Shown here: positions 10,070 to 21,717 of the stretch, piece by piece
Layout: every line of letters starts with the position of its first letter
Numbering within the stretch: the first letter of the stretch is position 1
From: Macrostomum lignano
Taxonomy: Eukaryota
NCBI GenBank assembly: GCA_002269645.1
Contig: NIVC01002747.1
Coordinates: 1-63,275 of the forward strand
DNA: 63,275 bases
Reading direction: 5' to 3'
Position numbers and translations under genes: made by a program
The notes under the pieces: model-generated
What the model saw: only the letters and a program-made list of their open reading frames with translations
What the model was told of the DNA's origin: nothing
Databases searched by the model: none

Positions 10070-13000
10070 ATGAAACTCATCGGCGCCCTGGCCCAACGCC
10101 CACACAACATTCTCCTGTTGAGCAGCGCCTACAACGGACTCACCCAGCGGCTGCATACTCACCTCATGGACCGCGGCCACCGCATCCAGTTCCGACTGGC
10201 TCTCAGCGAGGACAGCATCCAGCGAGATGTGGACGCGGTGAAGCCAGAATTCGTCCTCTGTCCCTTCCTGACACGGCGAATCCCGCCGGCAGTCTGCGCC
10301 AGCCAGCCCTGTCTGGTGCTGCATCCCGGGGTGGTCGCCGACGGTGGCCCGTCATCCCTTGACTGGGCGGTGCTGCGACGCGAAGCCGAGTGGGGTGTCA
10401 CCCTCCTGCAGGCCGACAAGGAGCTAGACGGCGGGCCAGTGTGGAGCCACCGGGACTTCCACGTGCCGGAGGGCAGTAGCAAGGCGAGCCTGTACCGCGG
10501 CCCGGTCACCGACGCCGCGGTTGAATGCGTGGATGAGTTCTTGGTGAAGTTCCGATCTGGCGCAAGGACGCCAAAGCGGCCAGGCGAGATGCAGAAGGCT
10601 ACGGCGAGGGGCGAGTGGCGCGATAGAATGGAGGCGAGTGAGCGGACGGTTGATTGGAGGACAGACGATACGGAGACGGTGCTGCGGAAGGTTCGCTGCT
10701 CGGACAGCACGCCGGGGGCACTTGGATCGCTGCTGGGCCGTCGGTTGCGGCTGTTTGGCGCGCATAGAGAGGAAGGCGAGGAGTTGCGCGGAGAGCCGGG
10801 CCGACTGCTGGCCACGCGGGACGGCGCGGTGTGTGTTGGCGCTGGGAATGGCGCGGTGTGGATCAGCCATGCTAGGGTGGAGGGTGGTGTTAAGCTGCCG
10901 ACGGCAAGTGTGCTAGCTGAGGAGATCAGCGCGGCTGGGGTTGAGGTGAGGGATTGCTTGGGCGTCAAGGAAGGGATGCCGTCAGTTCTGGACTTCGCTC
11001 TACTACCCACACCATTCCTCCGCCCCTTTGCCCCTTCGCTCCTCTGCCCCTCTGCCCTCCACCCCTCCGCCCATCCGCCCCTCCGCCCCTCCGCTCCTCC
11101 GCTCCTCCGCTCCTCCGCCCCTCTGCCCCTCCGCTCCTCCGCCCCTCCGCCCCTCCGCCCCTCCGCCCCTCTGCCCCTCCGCTCCTCCGCCCCTCCGCCC
11201 CTCCGCCCCTCCACCCCTCCGCCCTCCGCCCTCCGCCCCTCCGTCCTCCGCTCCTCCGCCCCTCCGCTCCTCCGCCCCTCCGCCCCTCCGCCCCTCCGCC
11301 CTCCGCTCCTCCGCCCCTCCGCTCCTCTGCCCTCCGCCCCTCCGCCCCTCCGCAACTCTTCCCTCCGCCCCTCCGCTCCTCTGCCCCTCCGCTCCTCTGC
11401 CCCTCCGCCCCTCCGCCCCTCCGCCCCTCCGCCCTCCGCCCCTCCGCCCCTCCGCCCTCCGCCCCTCCGCCCCTCCACCCTCCACCCCTCCGCCCCTCCG
11501 CAACTCTCCCCCTCTGCAACTCCGCCCCTCCGCCCTCCGCCCCTCCGCCCCTCCGCTCCTCCGCAACTCTGCCCCTCTGCAACTCCGCCCCTCCGCCCCT
11601 CTGCCCTCCGCCCCTCCTCCCCTCCGCTCCTCCGCTCCTCCGCCCTCCGCCCCTCTGCCCCTCCGCCCTCCGCCCCTCCGCAACTCTGCCCCTCTGCAAC
11701 TCCGCCCCTCCGACCTCCGCCCCTCCGCCCCTCCGCCCCTCCGCCCCTCCGCCCTCCGCCCATCCGCCCCTAAGCAACTCTGCCCCTCTGCAACTCCGCC
11801 CCTCCTCCCCTCTGCCCTCCGCCCCTCCGCCCCTCCGCAACTCTGCCCCTCTGCAACTCCGCCCCTCCGCCCTCCGCCCCTCCGCCCTCCGCCCTTCCGC
11901 CCCTCCGTCCCTCCGCCCCTCCGCCCTCCGCCCTTAAACAGCCTCATCCCACCCGCACCCATTAACCCACAGGAAGTCCCGTACAGCCCCTTTGGCTCGG
12001 ACCACCGCGCTACCTTCAGAGAGATCTGGTACGAACAGGTAGAGCACGTCGGCATCCTGAACTTCAACTTCAACAACGGCGCCATGAGCACCGACCAGTG
12101 CCGTCGACTCACCGAGGCCTACCGAGAGGCCAAGCAGCTCGACGCCAAGGTGCTCATCCTGCAGGGCAACGGGGATTTCTTCAGCAACGGCATCCACCTC
12201 AATGTCATTGAAGCGGCACCGCGGCCCGAGCAGGTGCGTGAAGTGATGGGAGATAGGACTGCTTCCATCTACGATGACCGAGTGATTGGTGCACTTGGCG
12301 TGGGGGAATTGACCCAGTTGTTAGACTGTCCATGTCACAGCCAGGTGGTTCCAAGAACGAAAACTGGCTGAGCAAAAATAGTTTGTGCCTTTAGTTTTTT
12401 ACGATGCAAGACACTTTATTCCTTGGGTAAGAGAGGGTGAGAGAGGGGATAGGGGAGAGAGGGGAGAGAGGGGAGAGAGGGGAGAGAGGGGGGAGAGGGG
12501 AGAGAGTGGAGAGAGGGAGAGAGGGGAGAGAGGGGAGAGAGGGGAGAGAGGGGAGAGAGGGGAGAGAGGGAGAGAGGGGAGAGAGTGGAGAGAGGGGAGA
12601 GGGGGAGAGAAGGGAGAGAGGGAGAGAGGGGAGAGAGGGAGAGAGGGGAGAGAAGGGAGAGAGGGGAGAGAGGGGAGAGAGGGGATAGAAGGGAGAGAGG
12701 GGAGAGAGGGAGAGAGGGGAGAGAGGGGGAGAGGGGAGAGAGTGGAGAGAGGGGAGAGAGGGGAGAGAGGGGAGAGAGGGGAGAGAGGGGAGAGAGGGGA
12801 GAGAAGGGAGAGAGGGGAGAGAGGGAGAGAGGGGAGAGAGTGGAGAGAGGGGAGAGAGGGGAGAGAGGGAGAGAAGGGAGAGAGGGGAGAGAGGGGAGAG
12901 AGGGGAGAGAGGGATAGAAGGGAGAGAGGGGAGAGAAGGGAGAGAGGGGAGAGAGGGGGAGAGGGAGAGAGTGGAGAGAGGGAGAGAGGGGAGAGAGGGG

Positions 13001-18773: not shown

Positions 18774-21717
18774 ATGTCAAAGTCCCGTATCCTTAAAGGC
18801 AAGGATCGAGCGGCCCAGATTGCTCATCGCCTGGTGCAGGCGATTACAAAGCAGAAGCAGCGACAGCCGGACTTTGAGCCCACCCTGGCCATCGTGCAGG
18901 TTGGGGATCGGCCAGACTCCAACCTGTACATTAGGCAGAAGACTCGCTTGGCCAAAAAGATCAGCGTACGAGTGGAGCATATCCGACTGCCGCGGTGGGT
19001 GCCCTTGGTTTTCTTGGATGTTTTGATATCTTGTGATACACCTTGACCCAGATTGCCTTGACCCAGGTTGCCTTAACCCAGGTTGCCTTGGCCCAGGTTT
19101 GACTTAACCAAGGTTTACCTTAAAAAGGTGGCCTTGACCCTAGTTGCCTGAATTCAGGTTGCCTTTAACCCACGTTGCATAGACCCAGCTTACCTTGACT
19201 CAGATGTCCTTGATCCAGGTTACATAAACTTAGGTTTGACTTGACCAAGGTTACCTGAAAAAAAGTTGCTTTTACTCAGCTTACTGACCCAGCTGACTGA
19301 CATAGGTTGGTCTCGCGCAGGTTACGAAACTTTATTTTCCACTCTGATCTTCTAAGCCAGGAGGCTCTGTGCAATATACGAGTGTTTACCACTCAAGCCA
19401 CATTCCCTTTCCCATCACCAGTACGACCAGCTATCTGGAGGTTCTGGGCCACATCCTGAAGCTGAACGAGTCCGACAGCGTCAACGGCATTGTCCTTCAG
19501 CTGCCGCTCGACAGCAATCAGTCGTCGATCAACGTTGACCGGCTGTTGGACGCTATCGATCCGAAGAAGGACGTGGACGGGTTAGGCTCCACGAACCGTC
19601 GCCTGCTGCAGCAGGGGAACCTGGACGAAGCATTCATCTCCTGCGCTCCGTTGGCCTCCCTCGAACTTGTCAAGATGTCCGGTGTGCCTGTGAAGGACGT
19701 CGTGGCCGTGGTTATTGGTAGGTCAAGGAGCTGGGTTTATGTGCTAGGTTAGATACTGAATCAGCAACTTGACCCATCTGGTGCAAGGAGATGGGTCAAA
19801 TTGCTGGGTCAGCTTCTAGGTCAATGTGCTTAGTCAGGAAACTGGGTTCAGGTGCTGGGTTCAGGTGGTGGGTCAAGTTTCTGGGTCAAGTTTCTGGGTC
19901 AAGGTGCTAGATAATCCTATTGATAGCGCTGCCACCATACTTAGCTATCACTGACAAATATTGGCAATTAAAATAAGGAATAATCAGTCCAAGGAGAACA
20001 CAACTTTTTAGTTAATCCTTCTCAATACGCGTACATCCTGAGCCAGCAGTAAATACCTTCACATAAGAGTGCACAGAACACATTAAGTAGTGCAAGTAAG
20101 TACTGTACTGTGTACCGCTAGAACTGAAAATGCCAGAGTCCAAGAGTTGGTGTTAACTGCTGGAATATTTTTAATTGTCAGAAATTCTGACTAAAAGTTA
20201 ATGTTAAAGATTTTACTTTTGACACTTCGACTAAAAATGAGCGAGTTTTGCTCTTAAGGAACGGACTGGAGCTGCACAACTTTCGAGCTGAAAAATCTCC
20301 TACCTTTATGGACAATTTAACATTCAAAGGGGAAAGCTTTACTAGCGTCTGAGGGGAAACTACTGTAAGTAGTATTGCATCCGCTAATGTAATAGCATAG
20401 GGCACACGCCTGGTGTTGTACTTTTTGTAGTAACGAAGACGAATGCAAGGTGCCGAGTTAGGAAGAGGTCGTAGATGCATGCAGCGCGTATATTTTAGCA
20501 GCGAAGTAGCTGGCTGCTATACTTAAAATATGAATAAGGCTTCGCCCATAAATCATAGAACTTAAGTTCATACACAACACCTGGGAGTACTAAACTGTTA
20601 TAGTAACTTTTGTTCCTTTGTAACTTTTGATCCATTTGATCCATGTTGTCATTAGAAGGGTTTAGTTGCCTTTTTCACAGTGAATTAGTTGTAGCTTGCA
20701 GGGGAGCCTTAATATTTAACACTGAGGGAGGGGAAAATTCCTCTACAGCGAATTGGCCCTGCTTCACTTTTAAGAGAAAGAGTTGCATAGATACATACTG
20801 AATAAAACGGTATAATATTATGATGCCAAGCGTGATAACCAGAAATATATTTCTCGTACATTTTATATTTATCGCTAGGATTTTTGCCGCCCATTATTAC
20901 CAAAATCAAAATTTAAACTGCACATTTTCAGGTAACAGCAACATGGTAGGAAAGCCGACCGCCATGCTGCTGTCGATGCTGGGCGCTCAAGTGGTCCGCT
21001 GCGACGTCGACACCATTGACACTCAAAAACTGGCCGCCAGTGCACAAATCGTGGTGGCAGCGGCCGGAGTTGCGAAACTGGTGCGACAAGATTGGGTGCG
21101 AAAGGGAGCTCTGGTAATCGACTGCGGCTGCAGCACCAATCCTGACGGTGAGCTGTCTAACTGTCTGCCTGCCTTCCTGCCTGCCTGCCTGCCTGCCTGC
21201 CTGCCTGCCTGCCTGCCTGCCTGCCTGCCTGCCTGCCTGCCTGCCTGCCTGCCTGCCTGCCTGCCTGCCTGCCTGCCTGCCTGCCTGCCTGCCTGCCTGC
21301 CTGCCTGCCTCTCTGTCTTCTATCCCTGTGTGTTTCTGTCTGTCTGTCTGTCTGTCTGTCTGTCTGTCTGTCTGTCTGTCTCTCCTATTACCTCCTTGTT
21401 CAGTTGTCTGCTCATAGTTTGGTACAATGAATTATTCTCGAAAAAATGCAACAAGTCACCTTTAATTTTGTTCACTGACAAAACCGCAACAACATCTGGC
21501 CCCTCTAGGCCAAGGCCTAGTCGGTGACGTTTACTTCCAAGAAGTGGCGCATCGCACATCGTACATCTCGCCCGTTCCCGGCGGTGTCGGCCCGCTGGCC
21601 GTGGCTATGTTGATGAGCAATGTGGTGCAGGCTGCCCTCAAGAAGGTGCACTATCAATCAAGCGGCTCGGGAGCTTCAGTTCGAGATGTAGAAAACACTG
21701 TTGCACCAAGATGGTAG
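18774..21717 (+). CDS. MTHFD1/FolD-like methylene-THF dehydrogenase/cyclohydrolase domain; exons 18774-18994, 19422-19717, 20932-21147, 21509-21717 (313 aa); probably the C-terminal half of a HypX fusion
   Basis: [26 protein letters not shown] (YxxxK), HIRLPR|[34 protein letters not shown] and [17 protein letters not shown] align with the MTHFD1 N-terminal domain. Splice phases 2, 1, 1 are consistent. TAG at 21715-21717, with no formyl-THF synthetase domain after it. Confidence 0.93.
21165..21380. repeat. (CCTG)n and (TCTG)n microsatellites in a FolD intron
   Basis: Seen directly. Confidence 0.95.

Follow-up and report, generated by a model that had tools for sequence, protein, structure and literature searches.

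HypX (HoxX) of A. aeolicus (PDB 6J0P), Ralstonia eutropha and Rhizobium leguminosarum is the aerobic synthase that supplies the CO ligand when [NiFe]-hydrogenase matures. It is known only as a maturation factor, which binds HypC/HypD (PMC6802093; PMC12134894), and its CoA acts as a bound prosthetic group inside a closed cavity (PMC6802093). The dehydrogenase/cyclohydrolase (D/C) module of folate metabolism is familiar as bacterial FolD and as the D/C domain of cytoplasmic C1-THF synthase, MTHFD1. The locus described here, from the flatworm Macrostomum lignano, joins the two. We read it, with moderate confidence, as a HypX–MTHFD1-type D/C fusion that would make CO from methylene-THF and that is broken by a one-nucleotide deletion in the copy analysed. 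The literature search found no paper on a HypX–FolD fusion or on a eukaryotic HypX. A sequence-only reading of the locus had taken the fusion to be undescribed, and this holds for the literature but not for the databases: GenBank/UniProt already lists the 920-residue protein, called hypothetical or named automatically (PAA58614.1, PAA80679.1), and it has many fused relatives.

Organisation of the Locus

The window, the entire 63,275-nucleotide contig NIVC01002747.1 of the M. lignano assembly, carries the HypX–FolD gene at 10070–21717 on the + strand. Pfam matches and our own model of seven exons, all GT–AG, bear out the earlier recognition of a spliced HypX gene and an MTHFD1/FolD-like domain on the same strand: Formyl_trans_N/C map to exon 1, ECH_1 to exon 3, and THF_DHG_CYH and THF_DHG_CYH_C to exons 4–7. 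The features are as follows.

10070..10945, + strand: exon 1, aa 1–292, HypX N-terminal formyltransferase domain (PF00551 and PF02911), GT donor at 10946
11973..12233, + strand: exon 2, aa 293–379, interdomain loop and start of the crotonase-like (ECH) domain, AG/GT, phase 0
17670..18155, + strand: exon 3, aa 380–541, remainder of the ECH-like decarbonylase domain (PF00378; alignment to PDB 6J0P)
18577..18994, + strand: exon 4, HypX tail, linker and start of the folate module together
18577..18672, + strand: exon 4, HypX part, conserved HypX C-terminal tail, aa 542–573, [32 protein letters not shown]
18673..18773, + strand: linker, aa 574–607 of the intact protein, about 34 residues, low-complexity and predicted disordered
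18683..18685, + strand: frameshift site, GGG in the window copy against GGGG in the other two copies (L001 and L011), FolD-type module out of frame
18774..18994, + strand: exon 4, folate part, start of the MTHFD1-type dehydrogenase/cyclohydrolase, ATG at 18774 (PF00763)
19422..19717, + strand: exon 5, remainder of the catalytic domain, with Gln100 and Asp125, then the first part of the NAD(P)-binding domain (PF00763 and PF02882), splice phases compatible
20932..21147, + strand: exon 6, Rossmann-fold core (PF02882, E = 1.5e-20)
21509..21717, + strand: exon 7, C-terminal PVPGGVGP motif, last helix and 17-residue disordered tail (PF02882), TAG stop at 21715–21717

One exon (18577–18994) does carry the HypX tail, the linker and the beginning of the folate module, with no HypX stop codon between them, as had been noticed; in the deposited sequence the HypX frame meets a stop only in exon 5. 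The PDB alignments of the two halves reveal no homology of the linker to either parent family.

Three Copies and a Frameshift

The redundant DV1 assembly of M. lignano holds three near-identical copies of the gene (99% identity), on contigs of 63, 181 and 533 kb. The other two, L001 (NIVC01002353.1) and L011 (NIVC01000571.1), both encode the intact 920-aa fusion, and their fused GenBank models, of 920 aa and 942 aa, are intact; exon 7 is 100% identical to both. A further difference in homopolymer length between copies lies in the 5' UTR (P0122 against window positions 10040–10069, in our reading).

The window copy, as sequenced, is unable to make the fusion. Its halves are out of frame, and the GenBank product of the locus (PAA55471.1, BOX15_Mlig011095g1; P0121) is a 692-aa protein consisting of HypX and an out-of-frame tail. 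One added base does give a single 920-aa ORF, in agreement with the predicted length of about 920 aa, but the three-copy comparison places the site at 18683–18685 and not in the G run at 18672–18675, which is identical in all three copies. Copies L001 and L011 likewise give the true linker junction as ...[19 protein letters not shown]... in place of the ...[11 protein letters not shown]... first read there. The frame is broken by a one-nucleotide deletion in the G run at 18683–18685: either the PacBio-based assembly has the homopolymer length wrong, or one of the redundant copies was damaged very recently.

It is quite possible, if somewhat short of probable, that the frameshift is real and that the window copy is a decaying duplicate in a line, DV1, with extra chromosome copies, the other two copies being functional. 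The locus would then yield HypX followed by about 115 residues of junk, or else no product of any use. Both the deposited contig and its annotation carry the deletion, the assembly contains 180 Mb of duplicated blocks (PMC5730564), and four amino-acid changes are unique to the window copy, two of them at conserved positions: Asn replaces His326 in the F-x-F-[YH]-NGAMS motif, and Ser replaces Gly671 in the conserved ...IG[IV]... stretch. However, the window branch has acquired six synonymous against four nonsynonymous substitutions, and in all the window copy and L001 are separated by 10 synonymous and five nonsynonymous changes; these counts indicate that the copy was under purifying selection until very recently. 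The deletion is the single indel between the copies, no further stop or indel occurs in the 2.76-kb CDS, and a single-base change in homopolymer length is typical of long-read error. The second homopolymer-length difference, in the 5' UTR, also speaks against decay.

The Two Modules

The HypX half matches A. aeolicus HypX collinearly from end to end (aa 13–567, E = 1e-136), following a 12-aa basic extension encoded in exon 1. Exon 2 aligns without gaps, and the tail can be aligned to the C terminus of 6J0P as far as aa 567, with F556 and V557 invariant in alignment A1. With HypX/HoxX the flatworm protein shares the two-domain architecture, all five residues proposed to be catalytic and the conserved C-terminal tail. 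By mapping to 6J0P (PMC6802093), His85, Asp91 and Asp120 (exon 1) are the equivalents of A. aeolicus His74, Asp80 and Asp109, and Tyr437 (17841–17843) and Glu446 (17868–17870), both in exon 3, those of Tyr416 and Glu426. All five are kept in the flatworm protein and in all 25 fused proteins examined. Unlike its bacterial counterparts, the flatworm gene is nuclear, animal and intron-bearing, and is fused to a folate dehydrogenase/cyclohydrolase.

In the folate half, residues 609–896 align to chain residues 2–293 of PDB 1DIA/1A4I (E = 6e-76), with numbering that runs one-to-one with human MTHFD1 from Met1. Both Pfam domains, Tyr52-x3-Lys56, Gln100, Asp125 and the PGGVGP loop are shared with the MTHFD1 D/C domain (human 1A4I/1DIA) and FolD. 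The catalytic residues Ser49, Tyr52, Lys56, Gln100, Pro102, Asp125, Gly273 and Gly276 are kept, the first three in exon 4 (Lys56 codon, 18939–18941). Animal MTHFD1 D/C domains score highest in the database search, at 254–257 bits against about 190–204 bits for bacterial FolD. In contrast to MTHFD1, where the D/C domain is N-terminal to the formyl-THF synthetase domain, the flatworm protein lacks a synthetase domain and carries its D/C module C-terminal to HypX. A second departure concerns the Arg173/His196/Ser197 triad, which holds NADP by its 2'-phosphate (PMC3368264); it is replaced by Asn/Asp/Val (exon 6), with a comparable Cys-Asp-Ile/Val pattern in other fused clades. This replacement suggests that the folate half uses NAD+. 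In P0005 and in the fused clade of Chloroflexota, Ile stands in place of Lys56, so that some clades may have a folate half that is not a canonical cyclohydrolase.

The modelled structure gives high confidence for each of the two modules; its pTM is 0.62, and residues 574–609 have pLDDT values below 50. The disorder of the linker and the pTM indicate that the linker would serve as a disordered tether, with no fixed or defined channel between the modules.

Distribution of the Fusion

The fusion is not peculiar to an animal. It is present in about 70 of the 120 best protein clusters matched, from Chloroflexota MAGs, rotifers, one heterolobosean, one dinoflagellate and polyadenylated marine transcripts. 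The reverse order, FolD–HypX, is that of P0141 and of the arbuscular mycorrhizal fungus Gigaspora rosea; in one gammaproteobacterial MAG hypX and folD are separate genes with 11 nt between them. Four fused clades are recovered in trees of both halves. The association of HypX with a FolD-type module has clearly been selected for: it turns up in at least four clades independently of one another, with the domains in either order, and in one bacterium as neighbouring genes. The functional coupling first proposed from this one locus gains by it. The fused Chloroflexota genes adjoin a phosphoglycerate-dehydrogenase-like gene (the first step to serine, and hence C1 supply).

Proposed Reaction and Its Alternatives

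Because the catalytic residues of both the HypX and the folate halves are conserved, we infer, with good support, that the fusion would convert methylene-THF to CO. The C-terminal module would oxidise methylene-THF to methenyl-THF, probably with NAD+ and not NADP+, and hydrolyse it to 10-formyl-THF. In the HypX module the formyl group would then pass to the CoA bound there, and formyl-CoA would be decarbonylated, yielding CO and regenerated THF. From the sequence we also infer that CO may be released, that channelling may occur and that a client metalloenzyme may be absent.

It is conceivable, but unlikely, that the fused enzyme releases no CO and converts formyl-CoA to folate-bound C1 units and back. 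It might, for example, salvage the formyl-CoA that arises in oxalate breakdown or from 2-hydroxyacyl-CoA lyase (alpha-oxidation) into 10-formyl-, methenyl- and methylene-THF, or it might export formyl-CoA. Formyl transfer is chemically reversible, animals have no known CO-requiring client, hyp genes are missing from the flanks of fused loci, and Lys56 is altered in some fused clades. However, none of the 25 fused proteins examined departs from the Tyr and Glu of the decarbonylase site, and disuse of decarbonylation would leave both residues unconstrained. Nor does the confinement of CoA as a prosthetic group in a closed cavity (PMC6802093) favour this reading, and the loss of the NADP triad with gain of an Asp fits the oxidative direction, with NAD+, better than reduction toward methylene-THF.

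Production of CO could also serve an unrecognised CO-ligated metal centre, in a hydrogenase-like or other carbonyl-iron enzyme, the protein remaining a maturation factor. We consider this improbable, even though maturation, with binding to HypC/HypD, is the only role known for HypX (PMC6802093; PMC12134894) and a distant [NiFe]-hydrogenase client is possible in the Chloroflexota that carry the fused gene. Fused bacterial relatives differ from HypX/HoxX in having no hyp or hydrogenase genes nearby: hypD and hypE are absent from the flanks of seven fused loci and of the gammaproteobacterial locus with adjacent hypX and folD, in a search whose control recovered the classical hypD-hypE-hypX arrangement. 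This absence is weak evidence on a hydrogenase link, because hypD or hypE appears in the flanks of only 24 of 77 standalone hypX loci, and because the fused loci are closely interrelated. No candidate carbonyl-metal enzyme was seen among the scanned ORFs of the 63-kb contig. We know of no [NiFe]-hydrogenase in eukaryotes, the eukaryotic hosts of the fusion among them, and for this reason the end product would be CO or C1 disposal itself, not a hydrogenase ligand.

One Gene, One Protein

It is very improbable that HypX and a FolD-type protein are made separately from a polycistronic, SL-trans-spliced precursor, the continuous ORF being incidental. Polycistronic precursors do make up about 7% of M. 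lignano transcripts (PMC5730564), and the first Met of the folate module aligns to Met1 of MTHFD1. Yet the frame is open through the linker of about 100 nt in both intact copies. GenBank gene models for this species come from RNA-seq-guided transcripts that were divided at their trans-splice and poly(A) sites (PMC5730564); they annotate both intact copies as the fusion and are not cut between the halves, which upholds the earlier claims of a single-ORF fusion in an animal genome and of no stop within it. In the relatives L007 and L008 the whole fusion is one ORF on polyadenylated transcripts, and single ORFs are found in relatives from five other eukaryotic lineages and from bacteria. The HypX half does have bacterial sequences as its nearest relatives once the fused eukaryotic clade is set aside, but bacterial contamination or an assembly chimera can be dismissed given six GT–AG introns full of host-type simple repeats, copies on three contigs, eukaryotic neighbours in the window (ankyrin, SAP, kinase and Ras genes) and a folate half of the animal MTHFD1 type. 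The intact form is a nuclear, intron-containing gene for a 920-aa multifunctional enzyme.

A Proposed Folate Route to CO

To our knowledge, heme oxygenase is the only established enzymatic source of CO in animals. The fusion would resemble it in product only, as a source of endogenous CO; their folds and cofactors are unrelated, and so are their substrates, heme in the one and a folate C1 unit in the other. Free CO in the mitochondrion would inhibit cytochrome oxidase, and thus the benefit of producing it is not obvious; to assign it to signalling, defence or respiratory control would be pure speculation.

The route by which animals are known to dispose of surplus formyl-THF is 10-formyl-THF dehydrogenase (FDH; ALDH1L1/ALDH1L2), likewise a natural fusion, with a formyltransferase-fold domain as its basis. 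In FDH, as would be the case in the flatworm protein, the formyl group of 10-formyl-THF is removed by way of a pantetheine thiol and leaves as a C1 gas, with regeneration of THF (comparison in PMC6802093). In FDH an aldehyde dehydrogenase domain oxidises the formyl group to CO2 and yields NADPH, whereas the crotonase-like decarbonylase of the flatworm protein would give CO without redox yield at that step. The flatworm protein also differs in having its own upstream enzyme attached, and the fusion would free the CO-forming enzyme from dependence on the cellular pool of 10-formyl-THF.

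Gene Structure and Domain Layout

The splice-site reading of the gene places its exons at 10070-10945, 11973-12233, 17670-18155, 18577-18994, 19422-19717, 20932-21147 and 21509-21717 (+), with GT-AG boundaries at all introns and consistent phases. A Pfam scan of the long plus-strand ORFs between 10040 and 21717 located the domains listed here.

Features of the fused gene and other coding pieces of the contig
10040-11020, +, ORF with Formyl_trans_N (PF00551) and Formyl_trans_C (PF02911), Pfam
17652-18167, +, ORF with ECH_1 (PF00378), Pfam
18522-19046 and 19369-19752, +, ORFs with THF_DHG_CYH (PF00763), Pfam
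19369-19752, 20820-21170 and 21544-21717, +, ORFs with THF_DHG_CYH_C (PF02882), Pfam
18577-18672, +, exon 4, part 1: conserved HypX C-terminal tail
18673-18773, +, exon 4, part 2: linker of about 100 nt
18774, +, exon 4, part 3: Met aligned with Met1 of human MTHFD1
2599-3897 (-), 7553-8101 (-), 29648-30460 (+) and 39854-40603 (+), other coding pieces (ankyrin, SAP, kinase, Ras-like)

Pfam and the splice model agree that the HypX and FolD-like modules lie on the same strand and meet within a single exon (exon 4, 18577-18994), as the sequence-only reading had claimed. Its statement that no HypX stop precedes the folate module also holds, since the HypX frame passes through the linker. In the window copy the HypX frame and the folate-module frame are offset by one base; as sequenced, the HypX frame crosses the folate exon out of frame and ends only at a stop in exon 5. 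The window ORF ends at 21717, after the dehydrogenase/cyclohydrolase (D/C) module, and the formate-THF ligase domain (PF01268) is absent by Pfam from protein P0001 and its relatives.

Other ways of joining exon 3 to the folate module were considered. A cryptic acceptor AG at 18682-18683 would bring the two into frame in the window copy (885 aa), but it is unsupported and deletes the conserved HypX tail. The older ParaSite model P0123 (UniRef A0A1I8GLG4, 888 aa), which derives from another copy, joins exon 3 straight to the AG at 18671-18672, corresponding to window 18156-18672, and so omits the 32-residue conserved tail; it may be an annotation variant or an alternative isoform. Both acceptors were taken as prediction variants, each of which drops the tail.

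The introns are nearly all simple repeats (window 10990-11960, 12385-14925, 16244-17575, 18190-18530 and 21160-21330), composed of C-rich CCCCTCCGCC-like units, long GA-rich GGAGAG-like arrays, (GAGT)n and (CTGC)n. The GGAGAG-like arrays read as 800-aa pseudo-ORFs on both strands. These repeats explain the extreme GC and AT skews at 10-18 kb and the many spurious long ORFs. Elsewhere on the contig, ORFs code for ankyrin repeats, a SAP domain and a protein kinase domain, and one matches the Ras family weakly. The contig is eukaryotic, and the genes neighbouring the fusion are ordinary eukaryotic ones, unrelated to C1 or hydrogen metabolism.

Three Genomic Copies and the Frameshift

A database search with the repaired 920-aa model returned PAA58614.1 (BOX15_Mlig028590g1), a 920-aa protein that matches the whole query (100%) at 99% identity and carries all five Pfam domains. 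Its 90% cluster also contains PAA55471.1 (BOX15_Mlig011095g1, 692 aa), which is the product of the window locus and equals the as-sequenced translation; the fused, partial PAA80679.1 (942 aa), from a 533-kb contig; and older ParaSite models. When the exon DNA of the window copy was aligned against the copies on NIVC01002353.1 (L001) and NIVC01000571.1 (L011), the sole indel in the 2.76 kb of coding sequence across all three copies was found in the G run at 18683-18685, which is GGG in the window and GGGG in the other two. It had been proposed that one added G at 18672-18675 would yield an ORF of about 920 aa. A single added base does give 920 aa, but the site was misplaced: the run at 18672-18675 is identical in all three copies, and repair there is rejected in favour of 18683-18685.

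The missing G is either a homopolymer assembly error or a fresh lesion in a redundant copy. The M. lignano assembly was built from PacBio data and is highly redundant owing to the extra chromosomes of the DV1 line; the gene models deposited for it in GenBank were taken from RNA-seq-guided transcripts after cutting at trans-splice and poly(A) sites (PMC5730564). A second difference in homopolymer length between copies bears on whether the deletion is a sequencing error: in the 5' UTR (window 10040-10069, compared with L011) the window has four A's (GAAAGAAAATTACT), and five are needed for the upstream open frame of PAA80679.1. The branch separating the window copy from the other two carries 6 synonymous and 4 nonsynonymous changes, and the comparison with L001 alone gives 10 and 5; these counts argue that purifying selection acted on the gene until very recently. 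Of the four replacements specific to the window copy, two fall at conserved positions, His326 to Asn and Gly671 to Ser. Whether the frameshift is an error or a lesion, the fusion gene exists in M. lignano, and the annotated 692-aa model at the window locus is a frameshift product.

The HypX Half

Residues 13-567 of the flatworm protein are collinear with residues 22-570 of Aquifex aeolicus HypX (PDB 6J0P; phmmer, E = 1.1e-136). The fold is that of HypX/HoxX: over about 550 residues, a formyltransferase with Rossmann and OB subdomains is followed by an enoyl-CoA hydratase/isomerase-like domain, as seen both in the Pfam matches (PF00551, PF02911 and PF00378) and in a confident AlphaFold2 model. 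In the A. aeolicus enzyme, His74, Asp80 and Asp109 serve formyl transfer, and Tyr416 and Glu426 serve formyl-CoA decarbonylation (PMC6802093). The flatworm equivalents are His85, Asp91, Asp120, Tyr437 and Glu446, and all five residues are invariant in 25 of the 25 fused proteins aligned. The flatworm protein shares the fold and catalytic residues of HypX/HoxX but differs from it in showing no linkage to hyp or hydrogenase genes, as far as the scanned ORFs of its contig and the flanks of its fused bacterial relatives go.

The Folate Half

Residues 609-896 align with the D/C domain of human MTHFD1 (1DIA/1A4I) at E = 6e-76, as against E = 7e-51 or weaker for bacterial FolD structures. When the folate half alone was used as the query, animal C1-THF synthases ranked first (254-257 bits), followed by bacterial FolDs (about 190-204 bits). 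As judged by alignment, the matches to 6J0P and 1DIA are decisive for the identity of the two halves.

PF00763 and PF02882 span exons 4-7, and human MTHFD1 numbering fits the flatworm module one to one. The D/C catalytic set comprises Tyr52-x-x-x-Lys56, Gln100, Asp125, Gly273 and Gly276, and the triad Arg173/His196/Ser197 binds NADP+ at its 2'-phosphate (PMC3368264). In the flatworm protein Ser49, Tyr52, Lys56, Gln100, Pro102, Asp125, Gly273 and Gly276 are kept, and the triad is replaced by Asn/Asp/Val. A similar replacement, Cys-Asp-Ile/Val, recurs in other, separately derived fused clades. In Rossmann folds an acidic residue at the position of this Asp is the usual sign of NAD+ preference, and NAD+ is probably the cofactor of the flatworm folate half. 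The module resembles that of the trifunctional C1-THF synthase MTHFD1 in its catalytic residues, but lacks both the NADP triad and the synthetase domain.

Lys56 is replaced by Ile in the folate half of all the Chloroflexota fused proteins (L002-L005, L010, L012 and L013) and of P0005, a polyadenylated transcript. The Chloroflexota fused proteins have a Lys two residues before position 56; P0005 shows the additional changes Tyr52 to His and Asp125 to Glu. These substitutions suggest a folate half that may operate differently in the Chloroflexota fused clade and in P0005, with the cyclohydrolase chemistry lost or changed.

The Linker as a Predicted Tether

An AlphaFold2 model based on 31 fused sequences has a mean pLDDT of 82. 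Both modules are confidently predicted, the folate module at about 90-97; residues 574-609 fall below 50, the pTM is 0.62, and there is no confident inter-module geometry. The linker is accordingly modelled as a flexible tether and not as part of a rigid assembly, and the prediction does not support a true substrate channel.

Distribution and Origins of the Fusion

The fusion is recurrent. A search with the full-length protein showed that about 70 of the best 120 clusters (90% identity) combine a HypX with a FolD-type part in a single protein 840-1010 aa long, so that the architecture proposed for the flatworm gene is shared by its relatives. The forward order occurs in Ktedonobacter and Chloroflexi MAGs, the rotifers Adineta steineri and Rotaria socialis, the heterolobosean Pharyngomonas kirbyi and the dinoflagellate Togula jolla; the fusion is also found on poly(A)-tailed marine metatranscriptome contigs that carry an AATAAA signal. 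The reverse order, FolD-HypX, is found in the arbuscular mycorrhizal fungus Gigaspora rosea and on a 21-kb metagenome contig. The sequence-only reading knew of no described HypX-FolD fusion. Within the incomplete searchable literature we too found no paper on such a fusion or on a eukaryotic HypX, and neither is mentioned in the 2019 structure paper (PMC6802093) or the 2025 review (PMC12134894); however, fused sequences are already public under automatic names, and the architecture is not unique to an animal. The names "methenyltetrahydrofolate cyclohydrolase" and "two-component system protein HypX/HoxX" mask what is a distinct family.

Neighbour-joining trees built separately from each half (100 bootstraps) both recover four fused groups, with bootstrap values below 70 at the deep branches. 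In the Chloroflexota group the HypX half sits nested close to HypX of Bacillus and Bacteroidetes at a bootstrap of 91, and the folate half falls with bacterial FolDs at low support. The Macrostomum clade includes P0284 and P0002-P0005, the latter being fused relatives from Logan/JGI samples; its HypX half has a bootstrap of 93, and its folate half groups with animal MTHFD1 at a weak bootstrap of 50-65 but with a clear bit-score gap. The protist/rotifer clade has a bootstrap of 84 in the HypX tree, and the reverse-order clade one of 100. The two opposite domain orders make a minimum of two independent fusions certain, and three or four are likely.

In the Macrostomum clade, the eukaryotic proteins have N-terminal extensions, 12-30 residues long, that are rich in Lys and Arg, almost free of acidic residues, and absent from all the bacterial proteins. 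The flatworm extension is short, at 12 residues. In composition these basic extensions look like mitochondrial presequences.

Among species-representative prokaryote genomes, fused genes were found in two Chloroflexota MAGs. In a gammaproteobacterial MAG, hypX and folD are separate genes with 11 nt between them, as one would expect if the two enzymes are functionally coupled. An uncultured Chloroflexia MAG (L014, CAVZJN010000013.1, 3699-5417) encodes a standalone 572-aa HypX that shares 88% identity with the HypX half of P0020, a fused protein; a glyoxalase-family gene is next, and there is no FolD within 10 kb downstream. Close relatives therefore differ by a gain or a loss of the fusion.

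Genomic Neighbourhood and Hydrogenases

Searches by tblastn with HypD and HypE against 84 loci found neither gene at any of the 7 fused bacterial loci or at the gammaproteobacterial hypX-folD locus, within the available flanks, some of them short. The same search recovered hypD-hypE-hypX in Nitrosomonas oligotropha as a control, and hypD or hypE was linked in 24 of 77 standalone hypX loci. The difference between fused and standalone loci is only suggestive, since the fused loci are close relatives of one another and some flanks are short. No hyp or hydrogenase gene was seen among the scanned ORFs of the 63-kb window contig, and we know of no [NiFe]-hydrogenases in eukaryotes.

The gene preceding the fused Chloroflexota genes is conserved and is modelled best by the catalytic part of phosphoglycerate dehydrogenase; its TIGR01327 score of 385 bits lies below the cut-off because the ACT domain is absent. 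A 132-aa ORF without known domains sits between the two. Phosphoglycerate dehydrogenase starts serine synthesis, the main source of methylene-THF.

In the gammaproteobacterial MAG (L042, CAVXTM010000004.1, 6862-19270), two DJ-1/PfpI-AraC-type regulators precede the hypX-folD pair, and multicopper oxidase/CopB genes and a 650-aa peroxidase-family (KatG-like) gene lie nearby. This is an oxidative or metal-stress neighbourhood, not a hydrogenase one. Standalone hypX genes of Lysobacter (L022, Lysobacter enzymogenes NZ_CP117873.1; also L020, L023, L031, L032 and L068) have no hypD or hypE within 10 kb; at L022, the one Lysobacter locus scanned for neighbours, these include a RadA/KaiC-like ATPase and a beta-propeller protein. 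The fused forms may not be the only HypX proteins that are independent of hydrogenase.

Proposed Reaction and Implications

Bacterial HypX transfers a formyl group to CoA and decarbonylates the product to CO (PMC12134894). In the fused enzyme 5,10-methylene-THF would become 10-formyl-THF on the folate module, with NAD+ as the probable cofactor; the HypX module would then place the formyl group on bound CoA and decarbonylate it to CO, with regeneration of THF. The tether would raise the local substrate concentration. We infer CO as the product. The earlier proposal that C1 units are turned into CO is reasonable and strengthened by the comparative evidence; the physiological roles suggested with it (signalling, defence, respiratory control) are speculation. 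CO may be the useful product, or the enzyme may serve as a sink for excess C1 units, in which case it would parallel 10-formyl-THF dehydrogenase but give off CO in place of CO2.

To our knowledge, HypX has been known only as a bacterial accessory protein that provides the CO ligand of O2-tolerant [NiFe]-hydrogenases. Intact and catalytically complete HypX modules appear in animals, protists and a fungus, where no such hydrogenases are known, and always joined to the enzyme that makes their substrate, which implies a second, hydrogenase-independent use of HypX chemistry. We tentatively suggest, as a possibility short of an even chance, that a patchy set of eukaryotes (at least one flatworm, bdelloid rotifers, a heterolobosean, a dinoflagellate and an arbuscular mycorrhizal fungus) owns an enzyme that converts folate C1 units to CO independently of hydrogenase and heme oxygenase. 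It would have been built repeatedly from a bacterial-type HypX and a methylene-THF dehydrogenase/cyclohydrolase, probably NAD+-dependent and in the flatworm clade of the animal MTHFD1 type, with a presequence-like N terminus in several lineages.

RNAi and transgenesis are established in M. lignano, and the protein is expressible. If its product is CO, the enzyme would be a new biological source of the gas tied to serine and folate metabolism, with a bearing on gasotransmitter biology, the control of mitochondrial respiration and the homeostasis of the C1 pool, and would offer biotechnology a CO-generating enzyme that is both compact and self-sufficient. Eukaryotic folate metabolism would then have an output not recognised before, either CO or the CO-coupled disposal of C1 units in which THF is regenerated.
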